From sequence record PV340856.1: a stretch of 64,000 nt of DNA; one strand, written 5' to 3'. How positions within the stretch are numbered: the stretch's first letter is position 1; each line of letters starts with the position of its first letter. A program made the position numbers and the translations under genes. The notes beneath the pieces are model-generated. The model searched no databases. It was not told the DNA's origin and saw only the letters and a list, made by a program, of their open reading frames with translations. This document shows, piece by piece, positions 1 through 58,500 of the stretch.

Positions 1-231
1 TTGAAAGCAAAGTTTTTGTGTCAAACAAAATTTACTCAAGATATCGAAAAATTAGTTCAGTCTTCTGATCTGAATTATATTGAAGCAATTATCACTTATT
101 GCGAAGAAAACAATATAGAGTTGGAGTCAGTAAGCAAACTGATTTCAAAACCACTCAAAGAAAAACTAAAAGTTGAGGCTATGGATCTCAATTATCTTAA
201 GAAAACCACTAGATCTCGTCTGCCTCTCTAA
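1..231 (+). CDS. gp33: late transcription co-activator gp33 (probably 5'-truncated by the window edge)
   Basis: YIEAIITYCEENNIELESVSKLISKPLKEKLKVEAMDLNYLK is the typical gp33 signature; lies directly before gp59. Confidence 0.85.
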   Translation: MKAKFLCQTKFTQDIEKLVQSSDLNYIEAIITYCEENNIELESVSKLISKPLKEKLKVEAMDLNYLKKTTRSRLPL

Positions 232-22297: not shown

Positions 22298-25200
22298 ATG
22301 CCTCTATCAAGATTAGAAAATTTTCTGAAGAACGCAGAAGGTAACATTCTATATGTAAACCCAAGTGATTTTGACGCTACCGATAGTATTGAAAACCGTG
22401 GTAACTCGCAGACGAGACCTTTCAAAACTATTCAAAGAGCATTGATCGAGGCTGCTCGTTTTTCATATCAAACGGGAAAAAATAATGACAAAATCGACAG
22501 AACAACTATTCTGGTTTTTCCTGGCGTTCACTACATTGATAACAGACCAGGATATACTGTAACAAATAATAATGGAAGTGCTGAGTTTAGAGTAAGAAAA
22601 AATGCTGGTTGGCAAACTGCTGACCTGACTCAGTTCACTTCTGAGACTAACTTTGATGTTTTAGATCCAAACAACGAACTCTATAAGTATAACTCTACAG
22701 AAGGTGGAGCAATTCTCCCCCGTGGTACTTCCATCATCGGTTTAGATCTCCGCAAAACTAAACTGAGACCACTATATGTACCCGATCCTCTAAATGATAA
22801 CCAACTATATGGTGGTATTCTTCGTGTTACTGGTACTTGTTACTTCACTGCTTTCACAATCTTTGATGCAGATATTTCTAAAAATGCATATTATGATTAT
22901 GACAGCAATACAAAAATTCCAACATATTCTCACCATAAACTTGCTGCATTTACATATGCGGATGGTGTAAATAATGTATTGATTAATGGAACCGACTCTG
23001 GTCTAACTGACCTGGATATGTTCTATTTCAAAGTAGCACAAGCTTATGGTGATGCTTCGGGTAGACCAGTTCCCGACTTCCCCACATTTGATGATTTTGA
23101 ACCAAGTGTAGACGAATTTAGAATTGTTGGTGACCTAGCTGCGGACCCCGTTGGCATTACCTCTATTAAGGCCGGTGATGGTAACACTCCTAACAATGTC
23201 ATTACCGTCGATACAACTAAAGCACATGGATTATTCAAAGATACTCCTGTTCTTATTGCTGGTATCACAACATCTGTCAACTCATATAACGGATCCTTCT
23301 TAGTAGAAGAAGTTATTAGTGACACACAGTTTAGATACTTAGCTCCCAGTGTTCCTATTACTGCACTCCCAACTCCACAAGAGATTCAAAACTCTTCTGT
23401 AATTATTGAACCAGATACTGTTGGTTCTGCATCTCCATATGTTTTCAACTGTTCTCTTCGTTCCGTTTTCGGTCTAAACGGGTTAGATTGTGATGGAGAT
23501 AAAGCTACTGGATTTAAATCCATGGTTTGTGCTCAGTTTACGGGCATCTCTATTCAAAAGGATGATAATGCTTTTGTCCTCTATAATCCAGATACCGCAG
23601 TATTTAACGATGACTTAAGTGTATCGGATTCTGATAGACCTCTGCACTCAAACTCCAGAGCAGTCTATAAACCAACCTTTGAGACCTCTCACATGAGAGT
23701 GAGAAACAATGCTGTTGTTCAGTTGGTTTCTATCTTCGCTATTGCATATGCACGTCACTTCCATGCAGAAAGAGGTGGTGACGCATCTATTACTAACTCC
23801 AACTCTAACTTTGGACAAACGGCTCTAGAGTCTAGTGGTTTCAGACCAGAGTCATTTAACCGTGATGATGTTGGATATATCACTCACGTTCTTCCCCCTA
23901 GAGAGATTCCAAAGAATGAAACTACAGCATCTTGGTTAACACTCGACACACAGAAGACGGTTGGTATTGGCATTACAGATCGACTATATCTTTTCAGTTA
24001 TAACACTGAAGAAATTGTTCCACCTGCACAGGTTGACTCATATAGAATTGGTGCGAAGAAAAGAGATAAATTATTCCTCTCTGTTGTAAATACTCTCACT
24101 GGACAAGCTGTTCAAGAGACTTATGAAACCCCGATTCTTATGCAGGTTCCTTCTGGGACGGGTGTTGAATCGGAGAAAGAATATCAAGTCATCAGAAATT
24201 CTGGTGTTAATGCTATTATTTCTAACGTCATTAGTTTTACAACTAATCATCAGCTTAATAATGGAGAAAAGATTAGAGTTTTTTCCAACACTGGTGAAAC
24301 TCCAAATGGTATTGTAAATGATAAAATCTATTATGCTATTGCTGGTGGAAATCTCGCTGCAAATAGAATTCAGTTAGCATCTACATTTAATGATGCACTA
24401 TCTCGTAGACCTTTAACTGGTATTTCTAATGGTGGTGGAGAACTAACTGTAGTTTCTAGAGTTACCGATAAATTGCCAGGAGATCCTGGACACCCAATTC
24501 AATTTGATAGTATCAATAACCAATGGTACATCTTGGGTCACCCAAGTGAAACCTTTAACCAAATTACCCCAGCACTTAGAACTATTGGTGCAGGTGTTAT
24601 TGGAAATGAAACTGGTTCCACTTATGTAAAACGTAGAGTAGATAATAGATCTCTGATTGATAGGTTATATCGTGTAAGATATGTTCTGCCTAAGGAACAT
24701 GTTGATGCTCGTGCTCCTAAACCTGGATTTGTTCTACAAGAATCTAAGACTGTTGGTATTGGTAGTGCATCATTCCTGACCGCTGATCTATCCAACCCAA
24801 CTCAACTTAAGAATGTTAAGATTATCAAAAAAGCTAATTATAGCAATACTACCTTAACATTTGAGACAGAACTTCCTCACAGATTGAGTGAAGGTGATTT
24901 GGTAAAGGTAAGAAATGTAGAATCTGTTAATAATCCTCTCAATAATTTTAACGTTGGATATAACGGCGAACATGTTGTCGATAATATCATTTCCAGCAAA
25001 GCATTTACTGTAACTGGAATCACCACAGATCCTGGTCTTTTCCTCAATGAAAACAACCAGAGAACAACACAACAACAAATTGAAGATTTACCAACAGTAG
25101 AAAGATCCAAATCTAAGGATTCTTTCTATGTTTATCGAGTACAGGAATCTAAACCACATATTCCTGGAACTGCTGGACAAGATGGTGTATATAACATCAC

Positions 25201-28200
25201 TCTAGTTTGTGGATCTATCCCATTAGATAAAGATCTTGGTTTTGGTGTATCCTTCAAATCATTTTCACAAGACATTAGAAACCTTTATCCGCAACAGGAT
25301 AGAGATAACTATGACTCTGATCCACAAGCGTCTATCTCACATGCAAATGCAAATGTCATTGGTAATGTAGTCTCCAATAATAGACAAAAATCACTAACTC
25401 GCGAAGCGTTATCTTACTTCATGCAGGGTCAAGAAGTTGGATATGCTGTTACTGGCGCAGTTGTTACTGGTACAGGTAATACCACTCTTACGATGTTTAC
25501 AAAAGCTGAACATCGATTCAATCAAATTAAGGGGTTACGTATTATCAATCCTGGAGCAGGATACAATAATGGTTCTGGTATTGCAACTGTTATCTATTCC
25601 GCAGATCTTGAGAACGTTACTCTAACTGGTAGACAAGCATCGGCTAAGGTACAGATCTCTGCTGCGGGTACTGTAACTAGTGTAGAGATTATTGATGGTG
25701 GTACTGGTTATGGTATCGGAAATACCATGACTATCTCTGCATATCCAGCAGGATCTCCTACGACTAATGCTGTTGTTGAAGTTACTGGTGTATTTGATAA
25801 TGTTTATGATGGTATGCACTTATCTGGCTTCGCAGATCCTCTTCTGAACGGAACATTTAAGATCGTAGATATTCCATCTTCCAAGTCTATTTCTGTTGAG
25901 ATACCTCAATCAAGAGGACTTGGACCTTACTATACTGTAAGAGATGACAGAAGACTGCCATCATATCACCTGGCAAACATTGGTGTTGGTGTAACCTATA
26001 TCCATGTTACTAATAGAGATGAAGGCACAGTACAGATTTTGACTGATGCAAACCATACTTTAGTTGCTGGTAATTGTTTCACCATTCAAGGAACTGGAAA
26101 TACTAACTGGGATGATCAAATCTTTATCGTTGATGATGTTGATCAGAACAATCCACTAAGAAGTATTCACTTCAATGTTGGTGTCCATACTGTTGGTTTT
26201 GTAACCTCTTATGATACAATCAACACCAGATTGTTTGGTACTGGTATTAGTGCAAATGCCAAGACTCTTGGTTTGGGTGAAAACAATCTTGCTGGTAGAG
26301 CATCTTACTTCTATACTGGTATTTCTACCACAGTTGCTTCTCCAATCACAACAACAGATACCCAACTTACTCTTACTTCTATAGAAGGATTTAAGAAAGG
26401 TGATTATATCATTATTGGATCGGAAATCATGCGATTCACCAATGATAACATCAATAATGTTCTCCGTGGTCAGTTTGGTACAGTCAACGCATCTGCTCCT
26501 GTTGGAGCAACCATCAAAAAGATTAATGTTCTACCAATGGAATTGCGTAGACCATCTATTCTTCGTGCATCTGGTCATACGTTTGAATATCTTGGTTATG
26601 GATCTGGTAACTACTCCACATCTCTGCCACAAAAACAGGATAGAGTTCTAACAGACCAAGAAACACTTGCTGCACAGAAGAAAGAACTTGATGGTGGTAA
26701 AGTTGTCTACACTGGTATGAATGACAGTGGTGACTTCTATACTGGATACAAGAGACTATCTTCAATCACTGGTGAAGAAGAAGTTGTTGGCGCACCTATT
26801 TTCACTTATACTGGTGATGATGCAGAGGCAGAGGGAACTAAAAGAGTTGCGGGTGTATTTGACGAATTACTTGTTAGAGAATCTATCACAGTTGAGGGTG
26901 GAGATAACAACAATAGAACATCACAATTCTATGGTCCCGTAAACTTCACAGAAAAACTCGCCAATAGTTCTGATGATGGTATTGAAACCAAGAACTTCTT
27001 CTTACGAGGAAATGCACCTCAGGGCAAATTATTAACTGTTGGTATTCAAACTCCAACTGGTGCAGCTCGTGCTGGAGATCTTTCATTTGCTGGTATTCCA
27101 GATAATGGTGGATACCTTGGACATATCTATGCTGAGGGTGATTGGAGAAGATTTGGTGTTATTTCTAGAGAAAAGAATAGAAATTTCTATACTGTAGATC
27201 AAGTATCTATTGGAGCTAGTGACGGACAAACTTTTAGATGGAGAGATGCTCTTGAAGTTAATGGTGTCACCAAACTGGATCACCTATTTGTTACTGGTAT
27301 TGTTACGTTTGCATCTAACCAGACATTCTCTGGTGTTACCTATGATTCAATTGTTGTCAGACAACTTGCAAACTTCTATGGTTATAACTTAAGTGGTGGA
27401 TTTTCGGATGAAGGTATTGCTTGGGAAAACTATGGATTCTATACCATTGTTGATGAAGGTGGTACAGCAAGACTCAACAACATGGAAGTTGTTGGTACTT
27501 ATGTTTCATTTAAAGCTTCTGCACAAGTTGACATTCTCTCACAGTTAACTTCTGGTTATACTGGTATTAACTCTATCAAGGGTGACATTACCTGTAGTAA
27601 TATCTCGGTAAGAGAACAAGATCCTCTGAATGGCAGTGGCAAGTTCTTCGCTGAAGATCTCGTAGTTCAAACTGGTTTTGCTACCGATTTCAATGTTGGA
27701 TCTACTGGAACTGGTGGAGTCCTGACAGTTGGTAATAGAGCAGGATCTACACTTAATGGACATGCAAACATTGTAAGTATTACTGGTCCTGGTATGCCAG
27801 ATGATACTGGTGGAGGTTCTGTTGCACTACCACCACAAGGTGGTGGTCAAACATATCAAGGTGTTTCTAGAGTTGCTATTACTAGTGCATACGTAAATGT
27901 TGGTGTCATCACCAACTTCCATGCACCTTCTGTCTCTTACCTAAATCAACCAAAAATTGCAAGTGGTGTTGCAACTTCTTTTGAAGTTACAAATAATCTA
28001 ACTGTTAATGATGCTGGTTCTAGTGCAACTATTGCTACTCTGAACTTTACCACTGGTAGTGGCACAAATCTAACCTTGAGTCAAGATCTGACAGTTCGGG
28101 GTGGTTCTTCTGTTGCAAGACTTAGGGAAATTGAATTTGATACTCAAATTGTAGGACCAACAGCATTATTCAATGATGTAAAATGTACTACTTTGAATCC

Positions 28201-29569
28201 CAAAACAAGCGGAACATTAGCAATAAATTGTACTACATTAACTGCGACAAATACGATTACTTGTCAAGGATCTTCTTTCTCAAGAATTAATAAACTCAAT
28301 TCTCAAGAAATTGTGATGGAACCATTAGCTAGTGGTTCTATCAAAACTGGTAAATTGCAAGTTGGCGATACAAGTTCCAACTCACCAAGTTCTGATGCTA
28401 AAATTAGATATTTGAATGGATTGACAGTTGGTAGTTCTAATCCAAGACTGGATATTAATTGTGGTCCTCAAGGAAAAATTACAGCTTTCCAAATTGAATC
28501 TACTGCAGCTTCTGGTAATCCACCGTTTGTAGTAAGATCTACGACCAAAGTTAATGATCTAAATGCCGATTTATTGGATGGACTCGACACATCTTCCAAC
28601 GATAGAAGTGGAGATAGTGTTGTTGTTAGAGACAATGGTAATTTTGAGGCGGGAACTATTACAGCTGATAACTTCAATGGGGGAGATTTCTCTGGCGCGA
28701 GCCTTGCTCTTTCTGGAAATCTTGCATGTAGTGGTACAGTTACAAGTACATTTTCGGGTAACTTATCAGGAACTGCATCTAATGCAACTAAAGCTACAGA
28801 TGTTGATCTTGGAAAGGGTGTTCTATACAACACTGGCCAGACTGCAACAACAGTCTCTAGTAATTTCTATTATCAGTCAAATATACTATATGCTCCTAGA
28901 TTCTCTGGTAATCACAGCGGTAATGGTTCTGGACTAACCAGTCTTCCTGCTGGCCAACTCACAGGAACCTTGCCTGATGGTGTACTTGGCAGTATAGATG
29001 CTGCCGACCTCACAGGAGATAATGGATCCCTTCCTGCAAGACTAGTCCCAACTCTAAACCAGGATACAACAGGAAATGCGGCAACAGCTAGTGAAATTAG
29101 AGTTAGTGGTTTAGGAAATGGTGCGGGACCACATTATCTTCTCATGCAGGAGGGAACAGCTCCAGGAAATCATTACACCAGAGCAAGAGTTGATGGAGGA
29201 ATTTGGTATAGATCCCACACCGACTCACTATATGTTTCTGGTGATCTTATCGCTTTCGCATCAGATGATAGACTTAAGACTAACAAAAAGATCATTGAAA
29301 ATGCACTTGAAAAAGTACGTTCTCTAAATGGTTTTACCTTCAACTTCAATGAAACTGCTGCGGAACTTGGTAAAGACACCGAAACCACACATGTTGGTGT
29401 TTCTGCACAAGAGGTTGAAAAAGTTCTACCTGAAGCAGTTACTGAATCTGCAACTGAGGGTTATTTAACTGTCAAGTATGACAAAATGGTTGCCCTTCTT
29501 ATTGAAGCAATCAAGGAACAGTCTGAACAGATTGATTATCTTAAGGAGGAGATTGAAAAGTTGAAATAA
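22298..29569 (+). CDS. long tail fibre with C-terminal intramolecular chaperone (peptidase S74-like)
   Basis: Cyanophage fibre N-terminus MPLSRLENFLKN.EGNILYVNPSD; C-terminal SDDRLKTN..IENALEKV..LNG.TF...GVSAQEVEKVLPEAV...LIEAIKE; late promoter upstream. Confidence 0.9.
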   Translation: MPLSRLENFLKNAEGNILYVNPSDFDATDSIENRGNSQTRPFKTIQRALIEAARFSYQTGKNNDKIDRTTILVFPGVHYIDNRPGYTVTNNNGSAEFRVRKNAGWQTADLTQFTSETNFDVLDPNNELYKYNSTEGGAILPRGTSIIGLDLRKTKLRPLYVPDPLNDNQLYGGILRVTGTCYFTAFTIFDADISKNAYYDYDSNTKIPTYSHHKLAAFTYADGVNNVLINGTDSGLTDLDMFYFKVAQAYGDASGRPVPDFPTFDDFEPSVDEFRIVGDLAADPVGITSIKAGDGNTPNNVITVDTTKAHGLFKDTPVLIAGITTSVNSYNGSFLVEEVISDTQFRYLAPSVPITALPTPQEIQNSSVIIEPDTVGSASPYVFNCSLRSVFGLNGLDCDGDKATGFKSMVCAQFTGISIQKDDNAFVLYNPDTAVFNDDLSVSDSDRPLHSNSRAVYKPTFETSHMRVRNNAVVQLVSIFAIAYARHFHAERGGDASITNSNSNFGQTALESSGFRPESFNRDDVGYITHVLPPREIPKNETTASWLTLDTQKTVGIGITDRLYLFSYNTEEIVPPAQVDSYRIGAKKRDKLFLSVVNTLTGQAVQETYETPILMQVPSGTGVESEKEYQVIRNSGVNAIISNVISFTTNHQLNNGEKIRVFSNTGETPNGIVNDKIYYAIAGGNLAANRIQLASTFNDALSRRPLTGISNGGGELTVVSRVTDKLPGDPGHPIQFDSINNQWYILGHPSETFNQITPALRTIGAGVIGNETGSTYVKRRVDNRSLIDRLYRVRYVLPKEHVDARAPKPGFVLQESKTVGIGSASFLTADLSNPTQLKNVKIIKKANYSNTTLTFETELPHRLSEGDLVKVRNVESVNNPLNNFNVGYNGEHVVDNIISSKAFTVTGITTDPGLFLNENNQRTTQQQIEDLPTVERSKSKDSFYVYRVQESKPHIPGTAGQDGVYNITLVCGSIPLDKDLGFGVSFKSFSQDIRNLYPQQDRDNYDSDPQASISHANANVIGNVVSNNRQKSLTREALSYFMQGQEVGYAVTGAVVTGTGNTTLTMFTKAEHRFNQIKGLRIINPGAGYNNGSGIATVIYSADLENVTLTGRQASAKVQISAAGTVTSVEIIDGGTGYGIGNTMTISAYPAGSPTTNAVVEVTGVFDNVYDGMHLSGFADPLLNGTFKIVDIPSSKSISVEIPQSRGLGPYYTVRDDRRLPSYHLANIGVGVTYIHVTNRDEGTVQILTDANHTLVAGNCFTIQGTGNTNWDDQIFIVDDVDQNNPLRSIHFNVGVHTVGFVTSYDTINTRLFGTGISANAKTLGLGENNLAGRASYFYTGISTTVASPITTTDTQLTLTSIEGFKKGDYIIIGSEIMRFTNDNINNVLRGQFGTVNASAPVGATIKKINVLPMELRRPSILRASGHTFEYLGYGSGNYSTSLPQKQDRVLTDQETLAAQKKELDGGKVVYTGMNDSGDFYTGYKRLSSITGEEEVVGAPIFTYTGDDAEAEGTKRVAGVFDELLVRESITVEGGDNNNRTSQFYGPVNFTEKLANSSDDGIETKNFFLRGNAPQGKLLTVGIQTPTGAARAGDLSFAGIPDNGGYLGHIYAEGDWRRFGVISREKNRNFYTVDQVSIGASDGQTFRWRDALEVNGVTKLDHLFVTGIVTFASNQTFSGVTYDSIVVRQLANFYGYNLSGGFSDEGIAWENYGFYTIVDEGGTARLNNMEVVGTYVSFKASAQVDILSQLTSGYTGINSIKGDITCSNISVREQDPLNGSGKFFAEDLVVQTGFATDFNVGSTGTGGVLTVGNRAGSTLNGHANIVSITGPGMPDDTGGGSVALPPQGGGQTYQGVSRVAITSAYVNVGVITNFHAPSVSYLNQPKIASGVATSFEVTNNLTVNDAGSSATIATLNFTTGSGTNLTLSQDLTVRGGSSVARLREIEFDTQIVGPTALFNDVKCTTLNPKTSGTLAINCTTLTATNTITCQGSSFSRINKLNSQEIVMEPLASGSIKTGKLQVGDTSSNSPSSDAKIRYLNGLTVGSSNPRLDINCGPQGKITAFQIESTAASGNPPFVVRSTTKVNDLNADLLDGLDTSSNDRSGDSVVVRDNGNFEAGTITADNFNGGDFSGASLALSGNLACSGTVTSTFSGNLSGTASNATKATDVDLGKGVLYNTGQTATTVSSNFYYQSNILYAPRFSGNHSGNGSGLTSLPAGQLTGTLPDGVLGSIDAADLTGDNGSLPARLVPTLNQDTTGNAATASEIRVSGLGNGAGPHYLLMQEGTAPGNHYTRARVDGGIWYRSHTDSLYVSGDLIAFASDDRLKTNKKIIENALEKVRSLNGFTFNFNETAAELGKDTETTHVGVSAQEVEKVLPEAVTESATEGYLTVKYDKMVALLIEAIKEQSEQIDYLKEEIEKLK

Positions 29570-29592
29570 ATACCAGAAATGGTGATTTTATA

Positions 29593-30354
29593 ATGAAAAT
29601 AAATTTTGTCGAACCTAATGAAATTAGAGTCAATCCAGATGCTATCATCAACAACAAAAATATTGGGGAGAAAAATCACCCTCTTATTGTTGTTGATGAT
29701 TTTTTACTAAATCCAGATCAATTAGTCAACGATTATACTAGACACATTCCTGTTGCTCTCAATACTTTGAATTCGGAATCAGTCATACCTGGGTGGTATG
29801 GAGAATTGCCACATAGATTTATAGAAATTGACACATCCATTAATCATTTAATTCATTTATTCACAGATATTACTTTAAGTGATAAAGAAATAAACACTTT
29901 TTCGTGGTCGTATCAGTTAAATGTATTGGCGGGTGGAGTCCAATGTGCGAGAAAAAGTGTGCAACCGCATGTTGATCCAGCAATGTTTGCATGGGTTTTA
30001 TATCTAAATCCAGAGGAAGAATGTAAAGGAGGAACTTCTTTTTACAGACATTCTGAAGCTGGAGATATGAATCTTGAATATGTTGAAAGGTCTTGGAAGA
30101 GAACAACTGAATATTGGAAATATAAAGAGTGGCAATTTGAAAAAATAAGAAATCATGAAAATGAATATGTTGATCTTGATGTAAATTCAATGGACGACTC
30201 TTGGGAAGAATATCATTTTGTAAATATGAAATATAATAGACTCGTTCTATATCCATCATATATTTTCCATAGTGCTCAAATTAAAAAAGATTGGTTTGTG
30301 GAATATCCAAGAGTAAGTATTTCTGGATTTATTAAGTCATCATATTTTACCTAA
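29593..30354 (+). CDS. 2OG-Fe(II) oxygenase-like protein (DUF6445-like)
   Basis: IVVDDFLLNPD, QPHVD, YLNPEEECKGGTSFYRH, YNRLVLYP..FHSA. Confidence 0.75.
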   Translation: MKINFVEPNEIRVNPDAIINNKNIGEKNHPLIVVDDFLLNPDQLVNDYTRHIPVALNTLNSESVIPGWYGELPHRFIEIDTSINHLIHLFTDITLSDKEINTFSWSYQLNVLAGGVQCARKSVQPHVDPAMFAWVLYLNPEEECKGGTSFYRHSEAGDMNLEYVERSWKRTTEYWKYKEWQFEKIRNHENEYVDLDVNSMDDSWEEYHFVNMKYNRLVLYPSYIFHSAQIKKDWFVEYPRVSISGFIKSSYFT

Positions 30355-30921
30355 ATGAACTTATATAATTTTATCTTTACATACGAAGATATTCTAAATG
30401 AAAAAGATCATGAAAGATTTATACATCTTTGCAAAGAATTTGACTTTGGAGAATGTGATAAGTCCGATGACAATTACTATGAATTGGATGTTTTAAGATC
30501 ACATATTCAATTATGCCCCAACGAACATAAAGAGTTATGGCAACTGAGTCATAAAGTGGCAATTAAAACAATGCCAAAAATATATGCTAATTATGAAAAT
30601 TATCTTCCCAAAGAAGTAGATCTATACAATAAATACAGTGGTTACTGGTTATGTAAATATCCCGTAGGTGGTAGATTATCAAATCATGCAGATCTTGATG
30701 GCGATTCTGGTTCGGTAACTATTTCATATACAATAAATGATGATTATGAGGGCGGAGAACTTAGATTTTGGGACAATTATGAGTTGAAAAATTATTCAAA
30801 CTCAGTTCACATTTATCCAAGTAATTTTTTATATCCACATAAAGTAACACCAGTAACTAAAGGAGATAGATATTCGATAGTTTGCTGGTTTGGTTATCAA
30901 AAAGGAAACGACTGGAGTTAA
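30355..30921 (+). CDS. 2OG-Fe(II) oxygenase (prolyl-hydroxylase-like)
   Basis: HADLD, NDDYEGGELRF, YPSNFLYPHKVTPVTKGDRYSIV. Confidence 0.88.
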   Translation: MNLYNFIFTYEDILNEKDHERFIHLCKEFDFGECDKSDDNYYELDVLRSHIQLCPNEHKELWQLSHKVAIKTMPKIYANYENYLPKEVDLYNKYSGYWLCKYPVGGRLSNHADLDGDSGSVTISYTINDDYEGGELRFWDNYELKNYSNSVHIYPSNFLYPHKVTPVTKGDRYSIVCWFGYQKGNDWS

Positions 30922-30923
30922 CA

Positions 30924-31961
30924 ATGGTAGAATTAGAATTACTCGAAAAGGTTCAAAGATCTGGAGAATATCCCAATCTACTCACATCAACCGATGTTGA
31001 TAACATCAAATTGATTGTTGAATCAAATCCAAGTCTATTTGCTTATCCTTGGTATGATAAGAGATCAAATAGGAGAGATTGTGGTGTTGCCATTTCAAGG
31101 ACTTTAGGTGGTTCTACACTATATGGATTCGGATTTGATGTTGTAAAACAAAACAGTGTTTATAAATTATGGGACAACCATATCCTAAGAAGTAATTTAT
31201 TTGCTCACATATTTGACAGCAAAATATATTTTTATGATCCAAGTGATCCATCATCTCCAGAAGAAGAACATATTAGTTTTGATTCTGTTCCAATATTTCA
31301 ACCTTCCATCAATATGATCTGTGGTATAGCTTCAGAAATTACTGGAAGACAGTCTGTAGGAGATTTACAAAATTTATTGCAAATCATTCAAAATGTAGAA
31401 GAATTGGATGATTTGGATTATACGCTTACATATATGCGTATCAATAGAAAAAGGCAAACTATCAAGTTTGATTTTGAGAAAAATGATAACAATAATACCT
31501 TCACTGATATAGTTGAATCTTTAACTTCAGAAGGATCCATCGCAAGAATTAATTGCAGTGGACTTGCAGGTATTATTGCCAGTGAAATATTGTCAGATGA
31601 AAATACTACAACATCTATGACAATTACTTATGGACCAGGAGGACTTTCGGAAGAAATATCTTTTTCATTATCAACCATTTGGAGCAAACTTGCTGCACCA
31701 GGAACCAGTCCCCAAGACAACTATACAGTTTTTCGGGAAAGATCCGTCTCACATACAAATTTTGTCCATGGAACATCCAATATGTTTACTAATCAAAATT
31801 GGATAACTTCAGATATATCAAATGAAATTTCCACATGGGAAGACAATACTATATTAGAGAACATTTATGCAGTTACTACTATCACTGCCTCAGATTCTGG
31901 AGTAGGTACAGAGTTGATATATGGATTTAGTGGACCCAAGAATGGAAAACAACCATCATAG
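30924..31961 (+). CDS. hypothetical protein
   Basis: 345-aa ORF from MVELEL, preceded by GGAG; converges on the Gly-rich gene. Confidence 0.6.
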   Translation: MVELELLEKVQRSGEYPNLLTSTDVDNIKLIVESNPSLFAYPWYDKRSNRRDCGVAISRTLGGSTLYGFGFDVVKQNSVYKLWDNHILRSNLFAHIFDSKIYFYDPSDPSSPEEEHISFDSVPIFQPSINMICGIASEITGRQSVGDLQNLLQIIQNVEELDDLDYTLTYMRINRKRQTIKFDFEKNDNNNTFTDIVESLTSEGSIARINCSGLAGIIASEILSDENTTTSMTITYGPGGLSEEISFSLSTIWSKLAAPGTSPQDNYTVFRERSVSHTNFVHGTSNMFTNQNWITSDISNEISTWEDNTILENIYAVTTITASDSGVGTELIYGFSGPKNGKQPS

Positions 31962-33641
31962 ATCGTAAAATAAAGCTCCATTAGAACTAAAAGTAGCCCA
32001 GCCCTGTGCTCTGCCAGCACTTCCTCCGACTTGGCCAACTCTTCCCTCTCTATCTCCTCTATATCCACATCCCTTTTCGTCCTTTTCTCCACGATCACCC
32101 TTCGCTCCTTTTCCTCCACTTCCGCCGCTGACGTTCCAAGTTCCGCCATTACCACCGCTACCGCCATTACCACCTCTACCGCCACCGCGGTTGCTTCCAC
32201 CTTGGCCTCCTTGGCCTCCTTGACCTCCTTGCCCTGGGATATACCACGAAGATCCATTCCATCTAAACCCCTTCCCATATCCTCCCGCACCGCCATTGCC
32301 GCCGTTGCCACCTTCACCTCCATTTTTTTCACATTTAGTCTTGGAACCCCAGCAGAAATACCCAGCACATCTTTTCACTCCTCTATGACCACCGCCGCCA
32401 CCTTTTCCACCTTTTCCACCGCCGGCACCACCACCGCCTCCACCTGCTGCATCTCCTCCAAATGCACCACTTGGTACATGAACGGGTGAAGCGAAATGTG
32501 CAGCAGGACCGCCATTGCCTCCATTTCCTGCGTTTCCTCCTCCTCTTTCTCCAGCCCAACCATAAATTTTACCCGAAACGGTCATCTCTCCTCTTCCACC
32601 CATTTCTTGATTCCATCTAAAGGCTCTTCCGCTAGGCCCATTTGTCCCTAGACGACCAGTCACGCGAACTTTTTTTGTTATATATGATTTCCAAACAGTT
32701 TCATCAGCAACAATCTGCCACCTCATAATTACCGTATTGCCATTGCCTTGAATGTCATAGATAAGTTTATTGGTGGTATTTCTCATATCTGATGCTTTGA
32801 TTTCCCCAGATGTTGGAACCTCATTCAAATGAGCAAGAATATCAAGAATCTTACTGCCACCTCGGTAAAATTCACTAAGTTTGGTATTACTTTTATCACC
32901 ATTAAATTTTTCTTCCAGTTTGCTAAAACTTATCGATCCAGATTGAAACAACCGATCCCAAGTAACTGCAAGAGTATAAGAAGATAATTCAGACGGGTCA
33001 AAGAAGTCATCGGGATTGCTTTCAATACTTCCAGAAGAAATAGTATTTCTTACATCCTCAGGCAATTCATTAAATGTTTCGCCATGCATCATCTGGGTTC
33101 TTGGATATTCTCTAGCAATACTAGTTACCGATTCAGTTACAGACATCGAAAGAGATTCGGAGTCTATATTTACTCTATGTAAGGTATCATCATCTTCACC
33201 AAGAATAAAAATCTTATCTCTATTTCCATTATATCTTCCCGCAACAGTTGAGATCCATCTAGCACAATCTCTAAGATCTCTGTTTGATTTGTATGGAGTT
33301 TCGGTCTTTCTGAAAAAACAATCTATAAAAACAATTTTACATGTATGAGATACAAATTTTTGAATAACTCCTCCATCTTCATCAGCTAAATTTCTTGAAG
33401 TAGTTTCATTTCCTCTAATTACAATTTTATATTCTCCATTATCTCTATCAAGATCCCATTGCGATGGTTGAAACCAAACATAACAATAAAAGTCTCCAAC
33501 AGTTGATAGGGTTTTGTAAACCTGTTCATCTGCTTGAAGAACATATCTAGTCAGAGGAAAAGTAGAAGGTTGTGGATTTGCATCAATTTCATCTTCAATC
33601 CTCTGTTGTTCGGGATCATAAACTAACTTTGGATTATCCAT
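31956..33641 (-). CDS. glycine-rich tail adhesin-like protein (gp38-like) with an N-terminal degenerate alpha/beta-hydrolase-like segment
   Basis: SGSISFS..LSEFYRGG..PTSGEI fibre-attachment-type motif; KIYGWAGERGG...GGPA...AGGGGGGAGG polyglycine repeats; own late promoter at 33668-33674. Confidence 0.6.
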   Translation of the reverse strand: MDNPKLVYDPEQQRIEDEIDANPQPSTFPLTRYVLQADEQVYKTLSTVGDFYCYVWFQPSQWDLDRDNGEYKIVIRGNETTSRNLADEDGGVIQKFVSHTCKIVFIDCFFRKTETPYKSNRDLRDCARWISTVAGRYNGNRDKIFILGEDDDTLHRVNIDSESLSMSVTESVTSIAREYPRTQMMHGETFNELPEDVRNTISSGSIESNPDDFFDPSELSSYTLAVTWDRLFQSGSISFSKLEEKFNGDKSNTKLSEFYRGGSKILDILAHLNEVPTSGEIKASDMRNTTNKLIYDIQGNGNTVIMRWQIVADETVWKSYITKKVRVTGRLGTNGPSGRAFRWNQEMGGRGEMTVSGKIYGWAGERGGGNAGNGGNGGPAAHFASPVHVPSGAFGGDAAGGGGGGAGGGKGGKGGGGGHRGVKRCAGYFCWGSKTKCEKNGGEGGNGGNGGAGGYGKGFRWNGSSWYIPGQGGQGGQGGQGGSNRGGGRGGNGGSGGNGGTWNVSGGSGGKGAKGDRGEKDEKGCGYRGDREGRVGQVGGSAGRAQGWATFSSNGALFYDL

Positions 33642-33667
33642 GACTATTATAGCTACTATTATATCCC

Positions 33668-33685
33668 TATTTATTGTGATAAATA
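33668..33685. promoter_or_regulatory. back-to-back divergent late promoters
   Basis: TATTTAT (33668-33674, ATAAATA on minus) and ATAAATA (33679-33685). Confidence 0.65.
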
Positions 33686-33706
33686 ATGAAAAACGTGAAA
33701 TTTATC

Positions 33707-33883
33707 ATGACAGACTACGCAAAAGAACTTACAGAACGTTCCGAAAAACTGAGAGAAGAACTACAAGAAATGCAAAAAACGTTTGAAGTGAAAAGAGAAG
33801 AATTTCTCAAAATTCAAGGTGCATTAGAAATGCTGGACGTTTTAGAAAAAGACTCTAAAGAAGCAGAGCAAAATGCTGATTGA
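33707..33883 (+). CDS. small coiled-coil protein
   Basis: MTDYAKELTERSEKLREELQEM...FLKIQGALEML. Confidence 0.6.
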   Translation: MTDYAKELTERSEKLREELQEMQKTFEVKREEFLKIQGALEMLDVLEKDSKEAEQNAD

Positions 33884-33915
33884 ACTCTGACAGAGTAATT
33901 GTATCAAGATGCCAC

Positions 33916-34054: not shown

Positions 34055-35542
34055 ATGTCTAACAAAATTACAGAAGTCGCAGTAAAAGATCTCTCCACCC
34101 GCAAGGTGATGCAGAAGGTCACACAATTCGCTACACTCAAAGATTTTTCTCGAATCGTCAAACAAACTGGTCGCGATTGCACGGTGCAACGTGAGTCTGT
34201 TTGGCGTTTCATTCCCGATAAACAGTCCAAGTATATGAGTGCCCTTGCACAAGGTTACTCCGATACTTCCATCTTTCACCTCATCAACCTTGAGAAATCG
34301 GTAGAGATTCTTGAACCGATCGCTCTTTCTTCTGGTGTTCCCCAAGATCTGCAATTCATCGATCACCAGAAGTCGTTCATCTCAAAAGGTTTTAACTGGG
34401 TTCACATCGACGGTGGCAATCGTTCCGATACCATTATGGATTGGTACGACAATAAGATTGCTCTTCAACCTGGAAACTATGTGATCCCTACTGGTGGTGA
34501 AGGTGATCTGGTTCGCTACACTCTGAACAAGACAAACTACTTCACTTATGAAGTATGTTGTGAAGAGTTTCCTGCTCTGGTTGAGTTTATCGACAACCAA
34601 ACGATTGCATGGATCGAGTATTCTGGTCTCAATCGTGAAGAACGTCGCGATTTGTTTGAACGTCTGAATGATAACGAGAACCTCAACACTGAGGAACTTC
34701 GTAACTGCAGCACATCGGAGATCTGCACAAACATTCGTGAACTGAACTACAAGTACAAGGATCACTTTGTACTTGACAATGAGAAGAAGACTTTTGTTCT
34801 CAAGTCTAATGCAGAACGCTACAAGTTCTGTGCATACCTTGCATCTCTCCTGAACTTCTACACTTTCCGTGGTCAGGTTGATGCCTTCTCTCCCAAGACT
34901 CTTGACTCAGATTACAACTCAAACTCTGAAGCAGAGAACAACTTCAAAGACTTCAAAAAGTTCTTTGAATCTACTTTCATGCCAATGGTAAAGTATGTCG
35001 GTGACTTCACCAAACTTGGTGGTGCTCGTAACCGTCTGATTGATCTTTACTGTGCTCTGGTTGAAATATATGCAGAGGGCGATGAACTTTATCGTCTAGA
35101 TAACAACAAACTGAATTATCAACACTTCCTTGAGTGTTATCTTGAGTTGGTTGGTAAGTATTGGGGTGAGGAAGAAGCACGGTTTGAAACTGGTCGTTCT
35201 TCCTGCAAGTTCAAGGATCTGTATGGTGCTAACACCAATTACAAGATGAAGCACCGTCTTGAACTTATCCGCAATGAGTTCATCCCCATGTTGAAAGAAC
35301 GTGGTATTGTTGTCACCAAGGATAAGACTCGTTATTTCCCTCAGGAATGGCGACGTATCTTGTGGTCTCGTCAACAGGGTAAGTGTGCTCTGACTGGCGA
35401 AATCATCCCCATCACTGATGTTGAGAACGGTGATAAAGTCCACATCGATCACATCGTTCCTCACTCAAAAGGTGGTAGGACAGTGATGGAGAATGCTCAA
35501 CTTACCCTTGCTGGTCCTAACATGGAGAAGAGTAACAAGTGA
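34055..35542 (+). CDS. DUF262 (ParB/Srx-like) plus C-terminal HNH nuclease; GmrSD-like
   Basis: QRESVW, HIDGGNRS, LFERLNDNENLN; RQQGKCALTG...HIDHIVPHSKGG.T..ENAQL....NMEKSN. Confidence 0.75.
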   Translation: MSNKITEVAVKDLSTRKVMQKVTQFATLKDFSRIVKQTGRDCTVQRESVWRFIPDKQSKYMSALAQGYSDTSIFHLINLEKSVEILEPIALSSGVPQDLQFIDHQKSFISKGFNWVHIDGGNRSDTIMDWYDNKIALQPGNYVIPTGGEGDLVRYTLNKTNYFTYEVCCEEFPALVEFIDNQTIAWIEYSGLNREERRDLFERLNDNENLNTEELRNCSTSEICTNIRELNYKYKDHFVLDNEKKTFVLKSNAERYKFCAYLASLLNFYTFRGQVDAFSPKTLDSDYNSNSEAENNFKDFKKFFESTFMPMVKYVGDFTKLGGARNRLIDLYCALVEIYAEGDELYRLDNNKLNYQHFLECYLELVGKYWGEEEARFETGRSSCKFKDLYGANTNYKMKHRLELIRNEFIPMLKERGIVVTKDKTRYFPQEWRRILWSRQQGKCALTGEIIPITDVENGDKVHIDHIVPHSKGGRTVMENAQLTLAGPNMEKSNK

Positions 35543-36108
35543 ATTTGTTCCCCACTTTAGTGGAAGAGTATGACCTTTCGGGGTCCTCTGCTCTTTCCAC
35601 ATTCAAAGAGATTATTGATACTCAGGGCCAGAAAGGACATCACTTTCTTGCTGTTGGGGGGGAGTCAAGTCATGGTCGTTGGGATCCATTTAGAGTTGAT
35701 GGATCCCGTCCATTAGTTAAACTCGTAGTGCAATGTATGCAGCACTATGTTGATAGGGTGAAACTCAAGCCAATTATTATTGGTAACGCATGGTATAATG
35801 AGTTGCCTCCTGGTGGTTGGACAAACAGACATCGCCATGAGTTTAGTACGATCAGTGGCGCACTATATTTGAAATTACCAGAAAATAGTGGAGATCTTTA
35901 TTTTGTTTCTCCTCTTCAGGGATATAGAATGTGTGAGTTGCATGATGGTCCATCAGAATGGAATGAGTATGAACATGACATGTCAATTAAAGAAGATCAT
36001 TTATATCTTTTTCCTAGTTGGTTAGAGCATGGTAGTAGAGAAAATAAGAGTGGTGAGAGTAGAGTAACTGTTAGTTTTAATACCTCACCATATTCACCCG
36101 ATTCATAA
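35539..36108 (+). CDS. 2OG-Fe(II) oxygenase (TIGR02466-like)
   Basis: AWYN, RHRHEFSTISGALY, LFPSWLEHG, RVTVSFN. Confidence 0.85.
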   Translation: MNLFPTLVEEYDLSGSSALSTFKEIIDTQGQKGHHFLAVGGESSHGRWDPFRVDGSRPLVKLVVQCMQHYVDRVKLKPIIIGNAWYNELPPGGWTNRHRHEFSTISGALYLKLPENSGDLYFVSPLQGYRMCELHDGPSEWNEYEHDMSIKEDHLYLFPSWLEHGSRENKSGESRVTVSFNTSPYSPDS

Positions 36109-36110
36109 TA

Positions 36111-36827
36111 ATGCAAATTTTTGATATTCTGCCTTCACCTCTCGCCGTAGTGCCTTGTCCCTTTCATGAAAATATGAAAAGGACCATTTTTGATGAGATG
36201 GAAAAAATAAGAGATACTGCATGGACAAATTTCGGATCTGATGAACTAAAACATTTGGACTCATGTTCAGTTCTTGATCTACCTGAGTTAGAGAGATTGT
36301 CTGTTTGGATTGAGGAACAAGCAGAGACATTTTGTAAAGAAGTTAAGGGAGATCACCTTGTAGATGGTGTTATCATAACTGATAGTTGGTTAAATCTTTG
36401 TGGTCCTGGTGGTACGCAATCCCCACACTATCACACCAATTCATATCTCAGTGGCATATATTATGTGAACTTTGATGCAAACATTCATTCACCAACTTAT
36501 TTCTATAAATCACAGAATTCACATATGTTTGCTCCACCAACCCCAAATATATCCTTGATGACTGACAATAATACAAAATATACTGAACCTCAATCATTCA
36601 CAGCACAAGAGGGGGAGTTAATCTTATGGTCATCGGAATTGATTCATGGATATAAACCCAATCAAGGAGACACTAGAGTTACATTATCTTTCAATATAAT
36701 GCCTAAGATTGTAACTAGTGGAGAGTATGGGTGGAAGGTTGAGAAACTGTCCCCTAAGGAGCGCCTAGATTGCGTAACAAACAAAAGTCATGGTAATATA
36801 TGGGGAGTTCCACATTTCGATCAATGA
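36111..36827 (+). CDS. 2OG-Fe(II) oxygenase (TIGR02466-like)
   Basis: SWLN, PHYHTNSYLSGIYY, EGELILWSSELIHG, RVTLSFN. Confidence 0.85.
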   Translation: MQIFDILPSPLAVVPCPFHENMKRTIFDEMEKIRDTAWTNFGSDELKHLDSCSVLDLPELERLSVWIEEQAETFCKEVKGDHLVDGVIITDSWLNLCGPGGTQSPHYHTNSYLSGIYYVNFDANIHSPTYFYKSQNSHMFAPPTPNISLMTDNNTKYTEPQSFTAQEGELILWSSELIHGYKPNQGDTRVTLSFNIMPKIVTSGEYGWKVEKLSPKERLDCVTNKSHGNIWGVPHFDQ

Positions 36828-55524: not shown

Positions 55525-58500
55525 ATGCCTGAACTAAACAAAGTTAAAATCTCTCAACTAATTGAGTCGCAGATTCCTTCTTTTCTTAATGAGGAATCTC
55601 CTCTTTTTGCCGAGTTTTTAAAACAGTATTATATTTCTCAGGAACATCAATCTGGTGTTACGGATATTGCTGTCAATCTTCCAGATTATAAAAAGATAAG
55701 TAGTTTTAATAATGAAACTCTTGTTCCATATAATGTCCTATTAGAAGATATTTTTGCTGCGGATGATACTATCACGGTTCAGTCTACTGTTGGATGGCCA
55801 GATAGTTATGGACTTTTAAAAATTGATAATGAAATTATTACATATAAATCAAAAACTAGTAATCAGTTTTTGGATTGTAGCAGGGGTTTTAGTGCAATCA
55901 ATAAAATTAAACAGGATGTTAATTCTGAGTTTTTAGAATTTTCTGATTCTGAAGCTGAAGAGCATTCTTCTGGGTCTTTAGTATATAATTTAAGTAACTT
56001 ATTTTTGCAAGAATTCTTTTCTAAGTTTAAGAAAGAATTCTTACCTGGATTTGAGAATAGATCTTTTGTTACTGGAACTTCGGTTCAAAATATTCTTACA
56101 AGAGCTAAGGACTTTTATTCTGCAAAAGGAACAGATTCTTCATATCAGATTCTTTTCAAACTTCTGTATGGAGAAGAAATTCAACTAATTAAACCTATTG
56201 ATGATACTATTGCTGCTTCATCAAACGTATATTTTAAAACTAAAAATGTTCTTGTAGAGAATCTTTTTGATGGAGATCCTCTAAGAACGGTAGGTAACTT
56301 CTTATTCCAGGATGTAAGCGGAATTGGAACGGTAAGTGCTTCGATTTATAACGTAGAATATAGACCAATTGATAGGAAAGATTTTTATGAAATTTCTTTA
56401 GACTCTTCTTCTTTCTCTGGAAATTTTGAGGTTCCTGGCAAAACAAAAACATTAGAAGGAATCCCTCAGTTTTCAAACAATATTCTTGTAGACTCTACCA
56501 TTGGATTTGATCAACAGGGATCACTTCTAATTAAACCAACTACAGATTCTAATTTTATTGAAGTATCTTATACAGACAAGACAATTAATCAGTTTCTGGG
56601 TGTTAGTGGTATTTCTACTGATTTGGTTTTTGGTGCTGAGATTTTTGAAGACAAATTAGCTTTTGCATATGCTGGACTTGGGCAGACATCTCTAGCACAG
56701 TTGAGAATTGTCAATATAATTGATAGTATTGATACAAATGATACTGCCAATATGTCAGTTGGTGATAGTTTGAAACTATCTACATTTGGCGTTAATAGAG
56801 GAAAAGATTCTCAATTTAATAGTTGGATCTACAATATCCCCACTATTCACAATATCAAAAGTGTCGATCAACTCAATGTTAACACATTCAGAATTACTCT
56901 TTTTGACTTTGTTGTATTTTACATTGGAGAGAAACTTAATATTTCTGATGGTATAAGAGAAATACAATCAGAAGTTAAGGATATTGAATATGATTCATCT
57001 AATGATGAGAAAAGATTAAGCGATAAAGTTGTAGTCCAGGTTTCCTCTAATATTCCATCTAATCCCACTCTTCTTAAGAAAACTATTGTTAAGGCAGAGC
57101 ATAATCTAGGAAGATTTCCAGAAATAACTAAGTTTCCTATTGGAATTCAAAATAGTTACATATCTGCAGATGGACAGGATTATTTTATTACATCTGCGGG
57201 CATTCCTAACTATCCGATATTTGCAACTGATAATAGAAAGTTTGTTAAGACTGATATTAATGAGTCAACCGATGATAATGGGACACCTATCAATGGTGGC
57301 GGATTTACATACTTATTCAAATCTGTTGATCCTGGATCATCTGAAGCAGAGGGAACTCTTGCTTTAAATGCTGGTGATGTTTCAATCAGACATAATTATA
57401 AAACTGGAGAAAAAATCTTCTGGGATAACATTTACAACAGTGGAATTCAAACAGGCGTTTATTTTGTTACTGCTATAAGTGAAACTGAGTTTTATTTGTC
57501 CTTTAGTGGGTCTGATGTTTTTTCTAAAAAGTATATTCCAGTAAGAACTGATTCTAGGGGGCAGTTTATTGTAAAATCTGGATATGAGGGACGAGAACTA
57601 TCGCATCAAAAAATTCTAAGAAAATTTCCATATGAGAGAAAGGTTGATTTCTTTGATGATCCAAATAAACGAAGTGTTAAAAACAGACCTATTGGTATAT
57701 TAGCAAATGGTGTTGAAATTTTTCCACCAACAGTATTTGATGAGCAGATTTATTACGGTGATGTTGTTAATATTAAAGTAACTAATAGAGGAAAAGACTA
57801 TGATGTAATAAATGGACCAGAATTAGTAATTCAAGATCAGAATGGTAGTGGATGCGAAGCTTTTGCAAATGTTAGTGGGTCTTTTCGTGAAGTAAGATTG
57901 GTTTCTCCTGGAATTGGATATCAGGAGAAACCAAAGATTACTATTGAGGGTGGAAATGGAACTGGTGCTGTTCTTGAATCTAATTTTGTAAAAGGAAAAC
58001 TTATTGTCAATTTTAAAGCTGATGGATCATCTGTAAATTCAAACTCGGAAACTATAGATTTCCCAACTAGACACAACTTCGAGATTGGCGAAGAAGTTTT
58101 TTATGATTCTAGAGGCAACACTCCTATTGGTAATTTAATTAGTGGTGCTACTTATTTTGTTAGACCAGTTGACGACCAAACAATATCTTTATATGAGACT
58201 TTTAGGGATGCTGTTAATGGATCCAATGTTGTTAATATTGGATCTCCAAGTTTTGGTTTCCATAAATTTACATCTACTAAATCTAGAAATACTATTACGA
58301 GAGTCTACGTAAGAGAACCAGGACAAGGATATTCAAACAGAAAAGTTATTGTTCCATCTAGAAATACTGCTGCTGGAACAAGATCTGGCATTGACACTTC
58401 TGATAATTATGTCTATGCCCGTGAACATAATTTCAAAACTGGAGATGTAGTTAGGTATTCATCAACTGAATCTTTAATTAGTGGATTAAGTTCTACTACG

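Follow-up and report, generated by a model that had tools for sequence, protein, structure and literature searches.

The locus and its variable block

The window, 64,000 nt in full, comes from Synechococcus phage Sf-FS3 (record PV340856.1). The gene of interest, SfFS3_30, translates without stops into 561 amino acids and lies on the strand opposite to that of its neighbours (Table 1). It is a real ORF: annotated in PV340856.1 and kept in S-SSM7 (SSSM7_033) and, in synteny, in 78 metagenomic loci of IMG/VR. The S-SSM7/Sf-FS3 lineage is also seen in Tara and JGI data, and 34 homologues are full length. The paper describing Sf-FS3 does not discuss ORF30 (PMC12284385). All motifs quoted in the original prediction are found in the translation: KIVFIDC...DLRDCARWISTVAGRYNGNRDKIFILGEDD (residues 102-151); SGSISFS, LSEFYRGG and PTSGEI (234-281); VTGRLG, GKIYGWAGERGG, GGPAAHF and AGGGGGGAGG (327-408); and GGSAGRA (539-545).

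A late promoter of its own had also been proposed for the gene. The NATAAATA motif bears this out, being kept in 40 of the 42 distinct upstream regions of homologues, where ATAAATA stands at -25 to -36 (mostly -30 to -36). Across the window as a whole, only two copies of ATAAATA lie on the minus strand.

Three genes separate SfFS3_30 from the gene of a 2423-aa fibre on the other strand. This arrangement is constant in related loci, and the synteny of the two genes is without exception in all long ones. SfFS3_29 is likewise found in all long related loci, always syntenic and at 26-55% identity; it has no match in Pfam, PHROG, PDB or the ESM Atlas. Sliding comparison with two related loci (L005 and L007) delimits a divergent block containing the distal ~450 residues of the fibre, two 2OG oxygenases, SfFS3_29 and SfFS3_30. 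Identity within it is 45-74% over most of its length, with short islands of 80-83%; the flanks are mostly ~80-99% identical (L007 60-79% beyond 35.4 kb). A swappable cassette had been predicted here. The variable unit is real, but it is not the adhesin gene alone, as the block spans the region from fibre tip to adhesin promoter. This fibre-tip-to-adhesin block is now bounded, and it differs sharply between otherwise near-identical phages.

Table 1. Features of the fibre-adhesin region, in window coordinates
Feature	Position	Strand	Basis or remark
2423-aa tail fibre, proposed adhesin carrier	22298..29569	+	phrog_529 tail fibre, 1377 bits
Divergent "host-range" block	28200..33900	.	sliding identity to L005 and L007
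"DLIAFA", fibre residues 2316-2321	29243..29260	+	C-terminus after predicted S74 self-cleavage; predicted docking strands
Peptidase_S74 intramolecular chaperone domain of fibre	29261..29443	+	PF13884, E=2.9e-16, residues 2322-2382
SfFS3_29, 345 aa, function unknown	30924..31961	+	convergent with SfFS3_30; 3' ends overlap by 6 nt
SfFS3_30, whole gene, 561 aa	31956..33641	-	ORF and translation; GenBank CDS "hypothetical protein"; homologues
Polyglycine-II sandwich region, residues 361-548	31998..32561	-	five long glycine-rich runs separated by loops
Conserved His/Cys loop, residues 419-439 (C425, C430, C437)	32325..32387	-	near-invariant columns, between glycine runs
gp38-type attachment domain, residues 234-284	32790..32942	-	S16 gp38 alignment, fibre contacts, PHROG 30374
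Linker, residues 181-229	32955..33101	-	pLDDT 39-66; gap fraction 0.34-0.60
Cut-down alpha/beta-hydrolase-like domain, residues 33-180	33102..33545	-	7 strands, 2 long helices
"GEDDD", residues 148-152, at nucleophile-elbow place	33186..33200	-	non-significant HMM alignment to 4zrs; conservation
AATAAATA, T4-type late-promoter motif (NATAAATA)	33668..33675	-	~33 nt 5' of SfFS3_30 ATG

The C-terminal region and the S74 fibre

The composition of SfFS3_30 changes markedly along its length: residues 341-561 are 38.9% glycine, residues 1-229 only 4.4%, and Cys/Trp/Arg-rich loops separate the glycine runs. Three cysteines (C425, C430 and C437) are near-invariant in the alignment of homologues; W461 and C525 do not vary at all. 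Foldseek ranks gp38 of PP01 and S16 first for the model, and the top BFVD matches are Gp38-domain proteins. Model residues 230-561 align to residues 2-240 of 6f45_D (218 aligned). An attachment domain and a beta-helix domain precede a polyglycine-II sandwich built from glycine-rich motifs in the model. The attachment domain consists of three pseudo-repeats (SGSISFS, KSNTKLS and GEIKAS) with a short helix after each (239-245, 255-258 and 283-286).

Direct sequence searches return little. A Pfam scan of the whole protein gave no match, and a PHROG scan gave only phrog_30374 (function unknown; residues 234-289, E=0.003). PDB sequence searches with the protein alone and with profiles missed gp38, yielding only glycine-linker artefacts and sub-threshold esterases. 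PF05268 was matched by neither SfFS3_30, 33 homologues nor the stand-alone relatives at E up to 10, and a Pfam rescan did not reproduce the precomputed PF05268 flags on some homologues. A collagen-like or low-complexity, unfolded glycine tail was rejected as an explanation, because the gp38-like model is confident and the register of the glycine runs is conserved. Points that count against a tip-cap reading are the three-gene gap and opposite strand, unlike gp37-gp38, together with the missing PF05268 match.

Variability peaks at those sandwich positions that are not glycine (identity 0.27), with indel hot spots at residues 341-400, 461-480 and 501-520. Several inter-glycine loops are conserved in their Cys and Trp residues (e.g. 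419-439 and around W461) and are not hypervariable.

The neighbouring fibre does end in the S74 chaperone attributed to it by the original prediction, with a PF13884 match above the curated cut-off. The cleavage motif, SDDRLK at fibre residue 2322, is of the S-D-x-R-x-K type, and related loci keep the fibre end GD[IL][TI]AF[AV] immediately before SDxRLK. Docking of the adhesin after chaperone cleavage had been proposed; it is established for S16, where self-cleavage exposes the gp38 docking surface (PMC7917993), and a controlled complex model reproduces it here. The adhesin was placed on the post-cleavage fibre end with an ipSAE of 0.71 versus 0.02 for the best control, in a model that used custom alignments outside the calibration and may owe something to memory of 6F45. 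Of 80 solved complexes, 58 attain this ipSAE mark, as against 2 of 110 mismatched pairs. The partners have pLDDT values no lower than 80, and 76% or more of the contacts recur between runs. One copy docks in silico on the trimeric, cleavage-exposed end: in each of the three chains, fibre residues 2316-2321, the last six before the cleavage site, contact the adhesin, which takes part with residues 234-240, 250-256 and 279-284.

Could SfFS3_30 cap a different fibre? Several large fibre-like proteins are encoded in the genome (e.g. an ORF of more than 2825 aa at 55525-63999), and SfFS3_30 is neither adjacent to the S74 fibre gene nor on its strand. This assignment is nevertheless highly unlikely: the only S74 domain of the 216-kb record is that of the 2423-aa fibre, and the genome has a single gp38-like module; the two genes share invariant synteny and a co-divergent block; their docking model passes its controls; and stand-alone gp38-like relatives always follow an S74 fibre.

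It is also very improbable that SfFS3_30 serves as a fibre assembly chaperone like T4 gp38, absent from mature virions, while the fibre tip binds the receptor. T5 pb1 and K1F offer a precedent, with S74-ended fibres that bind receptors directly, and the Sf-FS3 fibre tip upstream of the cleavage site is itself hypervariable. In the related phage S-SCSM2R, ORF45 (long tail fiber distal subunit) was designated the RBP by its authors and reported in the virion proteome (PMC12801897). Shared annotation, size, position and an S74-like C-terminal end, rather than a direct comparison, make ORF45 a putative homologue of the 2423-aa fibre. No adhesin gene was found in the S-SCSM2R genome, so a fibre of this kind can apparently work uncapped. 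As a candidate homologue of SfFS3_30, ORF45 was rejected, its match being to the giant fibre. Against the chaperone role, SfFS3_30 has the full adhesin fold, unlike T4 gp38, which is without a polyglycine sandwich; docking is predicted on the post-cleavage fibre end, not on unfolded fibre; and the sandwich loops vary like host-range loops. T4 gp38 is also very different in sequence from S16 gp38 and assists only fibre folding and assembly (PMC6851490).

The N-terminal domain

The N-terminal part had been described as an apparently catalytically dead esterase fold and compared with the HSL family. Its fold matches are exclusively alpha/beta hydrolases (Z up to 8.4, a middling value), and a Foldseek-independent search of 48,161 chains placed this one superfamily in all of the top 50 positions. 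HSL-type esterases (14-18% identity) head the Foldseek 3Di+AA ranking, and weak HMM matches fall on the helix-B/strand-5 segment, as in those esterases. The likeness of fold is middling, and sequence searches do not establish HSL membership. The domain profile had no significant match in Pfam (BD-FAE at E=0.23 in 2 of 33 members), matches to 4zrs were sub-threshold (E=0.23 and 1.2), and a profile search of 1.84 billion representative proteins gave 22 matches and no hydrolase. The sole non-family match in that search (P0064) was discarded as a tandem-repeat artefact, and the ESM Atlas gave no usable match. The domain is found only in this phage's family, the S-SSM7/Sf-FS3 lineage.

These non-significant sequence links, together with the missing helix C after the "elbow", allow the domain of a tip adhesin to be read as a generic three-layer alpha/beta sandwich whose hydrolase likeness is a topological coincidence. 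Such a coincidence is possible but rather unlikely, given fold matches from one superfamily, the first rank of HSL-type esterases and the shared position of the weak HMM matches.

Conservation columns bear out an apparent lack of canonical Ser/His catalytic equipment. The domain has no invariant Ser or His (residues 1-221 hold no near-invariant His), and the HGG oxyanion motif after strand 3 is absent. In place of a GxSxG nucleophile elbow there is GEDDD, followed in the model by a beta-strand (154-159) instead of a helix. The further claim that the nucleophile elbow reads GEDDD fares less evenly. In the non-significant 4zrs alignment, IFILGE stands opposite IVLSGQ, immediately before SAG, and D150 is near-invariant; G148, however, varies (D or N in relatives), and helix C does not follow.

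No other part of the protein is as conserved as this domain (0.50 versus 0.27 in the sandwich loops), and the linker behind it is indel-rich and mostly missing in most homologues. The domain precedes the attachment domain and is highly conserved, which suggests that it binds something constant. Lipid or acylated sugar had been put forward as possible ligands; conservation of the core would sooner point to a constant partner than to a host receptor that varies. The favoured guess is that the domain binds the distal shaft of the fibre itself, or else some other component of the virion or of its assembly, the alternative being a conserved envelope ligand.

In a wider, improbable reading, the domain is host-directed. 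It would either serve as a second head, with a conserved glycan or lipid of the envelope as its ligand, or retain some enzyme activity towards the envelope of Synechococcus through D150 and the conserved polar cluster R111/N120/D122/D125 at the C-terminal edge of the sheet. Near-invariance of D150 at the nucleophile place and conservation of the cluster speak for it, as does the presence among the fold matches of non-catalytic alpha/beta-hydrolase folds that serve as binding modules (neuroligin, thyroglobulin ChEL, GID1 and DPP10). Against it stand the missing His and HGG, the reduced second half of the fold, a position before the attachment domain, which puts it towards the fibre and away from the cell, and a level of conservation unlike that of a host-range surface. 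If it were true, the domain would be a new kind of functional fibre-tip module and SfFS3_30 the first two-function gp38-type adhesin, and a functional domain would explain confinement to one abundant marine cyanophage lineage. In any case, a lineage-specific alpha/beta domain is a small puzzle of fibre architecture.

Proposed assembly and comparison with known systems

SfFS3_30 is best explained, with a probability of about 70%, as a gp38-type (S16/T2/PP01) adhesin that is expressed late, caps the fibre tip as a monomer and carries a lineage-specific N-terminal domain. The computations behind this reading comprise fold matches, homology to stand-alone gp38-like proteins, one-to-one occurrence with S74, synteny, the promoter motif and controlled docking. 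In the proposed mechanism, the 2423-aa fibre would trimerise and its S74 chaperone would cleave itself off between A2321 and S2322 before docking. The three freed C-terminal strands (...GDLIAFA) would then be caught by the three pseudo-repeats of the adhesin (residues 234-284). SfFS3_30 would thereby become a virion component, for which the conserved late-promoter motif is the sole, indirect sign. Once docked, the polyglycine-II sandwich (~361-548) would be directed away from the fibre, and its variable non-glycine loops would touch a receptor on the surface of Synechococcus and so determine host specificity. The first 230 residues would be a cyanophage-lineage add-on, a cut-down hydrolase-like domain on a floppy linker, with a suggested binding role.

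Receptor recognition of Synechococcus and Prochlorococcus by marine T4-like cyanophages is poorly known, and SfFS3_30 is annotated only as hypothetical. It is a candidate host-range determinant for the S-SSM7/Sf-FS3 lineage. More widely, gp38-type caps appear to accompany S74-cleaved fibres across coliphage myoviruses, marine podoviruses and cyanomyoviruses, and the short conserved fibre end (...TAF/Y) may be the predicted socket for the cap. Such a cap-S74 rule, if true, would help to predict or swap receptor-binding tips in laboratory phage-host systems.

The closest architecture is that of gp38 from S16 (PDB 6F45) and from the T2/T6/PP01 Straboviridae (PDB 9V85; PF05268). The shared three-part plan comprises an attachment domain, a beta-helix and a polyglycine-II sandwich of glycine-rich motifs with loops; shared too is a monomer (predicted for SfFS3_30) on a trimeric fibre end freed by S74-type self-cleavage. 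The cleavage sites read DLNVS^SDRRIKK in S16 and DLIAFA^SDDRLKT in the Sf-FS3 fibre. Identity of SfFS3_30 to these proteins is only 14-19%, with no sequence match in Pfam or PDB. SfFS3_30 differs from them in an N-terminal extension of ~230 residues, in the size of its sandwich (larger, at ~188 residues) and its conserved Cys/Trp loops, and in its host, a marine cyanobacterium. Its predicted interface pairs the last six fibre residues with three S-G-x-I-x-F-S-like segments, which may or may not be equivalent to the tryptophan prongs of S16. The S16-type gp38 gene lies directly downstream of the fibre gene; in Sf-FS3 the two are three genes apart and on opposite strands.

Stand-alone gp38-like proteins of uncultured T7-like podoviruses (P0036-P0044; contigs L081-L083) are homologous over residues 232-420. 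The hhalign comparison reaches 99.9% (E=6e-34), with their residue 4 at residue 232 of SfFS3_30. They share the N-terminal triple motif, the glycine runs and the Cys-rich insert, and are without the alpha/beta domain and the linker. Their genes are co-oriented with, and directly downstream of, a short S74 fibre. The fibre ends (...NVTAY^SD and ...DDITAFYS^SD) follow the pattern ...TA[FY](x)^SD.

For the N-terminal domain, the comparison is with HSL/Abhydrolase_3/BD-FAE esterases (6NKF, 5AO9, 4ZRS) and S9 peptidases (7NE5, 7PX8). The hairpin, strands 3-5 and helices A and B match, and the helix-B/strand-5 segment (D..C..W......Y.....DKI) carries a weak sequence echo of these hydrolases. At ~145 residues versus 250-300, the domain is much shorter; unlike them it has no GxSxG, HGG, conserved His or acid loop, and a strand replaces helix C.

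Among cyanophages, the fibre gp24 of the myocyanophage Pam3 has a receptor-binding tip of stacked glycine-rich motifs, which its authors compare with S16 gp38 (PMC9608196). There, the glycine-rich domain lies inside the trimeric fibre and depends for its folding on gp25, a separate chaperone (PMC9608196). Sf-FS3, unlike Pam3, is predicted to cap its S74 fibre with a monomer that is a protein of its own.

Identity and fold of SfFS3_30

The window is an exact match to Synechococcus phage Sf-FS3 (PV340856.1). This T4-like cyanomyovirus has a 216-kb genome and came from the sponge Petrosia ficiformis, with WH8102 as the isolation host (PMC12284385). The original prediction described SfFS3_30 as a gp38-type polyglycine adhesin with a non-catalytic hydrolase-like domain, paired with an S74 fibre and provided with its own late promoter. 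This reading is largely right, and all the strings it quoted are found in the translation.

Features of the adhesin locus and of related loci
Feature	Position	Strand	Remarks
Tail fibre, 2423 aa	22298-29569	+	phrog_529, 1377 bits
Four 2OG-Fe(II) oxygenase/prolyl-hydroxylase-like genes	29593-30921 and 35539-36827	+	flank fibre-tip/adhesin block
SfFS3_29, 345 aa	30924-31961	+	convergent with adhesin gene; 3' ends overlap 6 nt
SfFS3_30, 561 aa	31956-33641	-	annotated 'hypothetical protein'
His/Cys loop, residues 419-439	32325-32387	-	C425, C430, C437 near-invariant
44-nt gap, adhesin gene/divergent small ORF (33686-33883)	33642-33685	both	ATAAATA on each strand
N-domain model strands	residues 36-45, 49-57, 71-78, 103-109, 139-147, 154-159, 166-171		
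N-domain model helices	residues 90-97, 121-137		between strands 71-78 and 103-109; between 103-109 and 139-147
Short S74 fibre, then stand-alone gp38-like gene	L081:6562-9332; L082:7089-9104; L083:870-2885		uncultured T7-like podovirus contigs
S-SCSM2R ORF45	L086:15807-22451		annotated long tail fibre distal subunit; the reported receptor-binding protein

Glycine makes up 38.9% of residues 341-561 vs 4.4% of residues 1-229. The AlphaFold2 model (33-sequence alignment) has a mean pLDDT of 75, rising to 85-95 across residues 340-560, a region almost without regular structure by DSSP. The best Foldseek matches in the PDB are PP01 gp38 (E=6e-6) and S16 gp38 (E=2e-3); those in BFVD are Gp38-domain proteins of Rhizobium and Agrobacterium phages and uncharacterised proteins of P-SSM2 and MED4-213. 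Gp38 is defined by an attachment domain, a beta-helix and a polyglycine-II sandwich (PMC12032242; PMC6851490), and the structural alignment spans all three.

A word-indexed protein search yields 34 full-length marine relatives (27-94% identity) and weaker matches of 367-450 aa. In profile-profile comparison, residues 232-420 match residues 4-184 of these stand-alone proteins (probability 99.9%, E=6e-34); since they begin at the equivalent of about residue 232, the first ~231 residues of SfFS3_30 are an add-on. No publication describing this family in cyanophages was found.

Across 34 dereplicated sequences, non-glycine positions of the sandwich are least conserved (mean pairwise identity 0.27), the attachment domain is intermediate (0.43-0.47) and the N-domain core is highest (0.50). 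Indels concentrate at residues 341-400, 461-480 and 501-520. Exceptions among the polyglycine-domain loops are the His/Cys loop and the invariant W461 and C525; C425, C430, C437 and C525 may pair into two disulfides or coordinate a metal. The gp38 descriptions in PMC12032242, PMC6851490 and PMC7917993 mention no counterpart of these Cys/Trp residues. SfFS3_30 is a testable candidate for a protein that sets host range in an abundant lineage of marine phages.

The N-terminal domain

A separate model built on 23 diverse N-domains has a core pLDDT of 82-92. Sequence-level comparisons of the domain give nothing significant, and a profile searched against 1.84 billion representative proteins retrieved, besides one repeat artefact, only the SfFS3_30 family and its fragments. 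The proposed membership of the HSL esterases is therefore not established. Nor is the proposed 'GEDDD elbow': D150 is near-invariant and falls at the serine position of esterase 4zrs in a non-significant alignment, but G148 is not conserved, and the next element in the model is a strand instead of helix C. The domain also has no conserved His and no HGG motif. Lipid or sugar binding is likewise not established. The best description is a reduced alpha/beta-hydrolase-like module, one that cannot act as a canonical serine hydrolase; descent from esterases is plausible, with odds somewhat better than even, but unproven. Because the domain is highly conserved and precedes the attachment domain on the side facing the fibre, a constant partner (e.g. 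the shaft of the fibre, or a protein of assembly or of the virion such as SfFS3_29) is favoured over a variable host receptor.

Promoter, gene order and the variable block

The motif AATAAATA lies ~33 nt upstream of the SfFS3_30 ATG and matches NATAAATA, the late promoter of T4-like cyanophages. Of 42 distinct upstream regions, 40 keep it between -25 and -36 (mostly -30 to -36), which bears out the predicted late promoter; just two ATAAATA occur on the minus strand across the window. The plus-strand copy (GATAAATA) abuts the ATG of the divergent small ORF, leaving no space for a leader.

The adhesin gene occurs in 78 IMG/VR loci. All long loci share the order fibre, two 2OG-Fe(II) oxygenases, SfFS3_29 homologue and adhesin (opposite strand), followed by a small ORF, an optional HNH gene and further oxygenases. 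S-SSM7 is organised identically; its gene at the adhesin's place is SSSM7_033. All related loci keep the four oxygenase-type genes around the block, and one of these families is labelled 'minor coat protein' in S-SSM7. SfFS3_29 has no match in Pfam, PHROGs, PDB sequences or the ESM Atlas; its homologue is present in every related locus (26-55% identity), evolving as fast as the adhesin. SfFS3_29 may serve the adhesin, or the N-domain of the adhesin, as a partner or chaperone.

In sliding comparison with the close relatives L005 and L007, flank nucleotide identity is mostly 80-99% and falls to 45-74% over ~28.2-33.9 kb, save short islands of 80-83%, and divergence peaks in the adhesin gene. The variable unit is therefore larger than that gene: it comprises the distal ~450 fibre residues, the adhesin and the intervening genes. 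A 98% identical metagenomic relative (L004:2233-3830, IMGVR_UViG_3300028384_001258) lacks 119 nt relative to window ~32272-32390, between glycine-codon repeat tracts (adhesin residues 417-457, Cys loop included); the resulting frameshift stops the ORF at 419 aa. The shortened gene reflects either a knock-out variant that arose naturally or a collapse of repeats in the assembly.

Pairing with the S74 fibre

In the Sf-FS3 genome the S74 domain (Peptidase_S74, fibre residues 2322-2382, E=2.9e-16) and the gp38-like module occur exactly once each. Related loci preserve GD[IL][TI]AF[AV] as the mature fibre end, immediately before SDxRLK, and the tip preceding it is hypervariable. A complex of three copies of fibre 2202-2321 with adhesin 222-561 was modelled alongside three controls. 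Its ipSAE is 0.71 vs 0.02 for the best control, a level reached by 58/80 solved complexes and 2/110 mismatched pairs; such a pass indicates likeness, not binding, the model may draw on 6F45 (S16 gp38), and the alignments lie outside the tool's calibration. Partner pLDDT is at least 80, and at least 76% of contacts agree between runs. Confident contacts join fibre 2316-2321 (DLIAFA) of all three chains to adhesin 234-240, 250-256 and 279-284, each followed by a short helix. Together with the single S74 domain and single gp38-like module, the controlled model supports the predicted pairing.

In the related broad-host-range phage S-SCSM2R, a 'receptor-binding protein' is reported in the virion proteome (PMC12801897). 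This protein, ORF45, corresponds to the giant Sf-FS3 fibre by size, position and S74-like end. An adhesin gene is missing from this phage, whose fibre ends ...DDDATT/SDARLK in place of ...DITAFA and has no TAF motif there.

In S16, gp37 self-cleaves its last 113 residues, exposing the gp38 docking surface (PMC7917993), and the predicted docking of the adhesin on the fibre end mirrors this arrangement. In T7-like contigs, two stand-alone gp38-like genes immediately follow short S74 fibres, which end ...GNVTAY/SDVTLK and ...DDITAFYS/SDRRLK. Podovirus and cyanophage fibres share the end ...TA[FY](x)/SD, a sequence likeness suggestive of a socket used generally by gp38-type caps. SfFS3_30 adds evidence for an association between gp38-type caps and S74-cleaved fibres.
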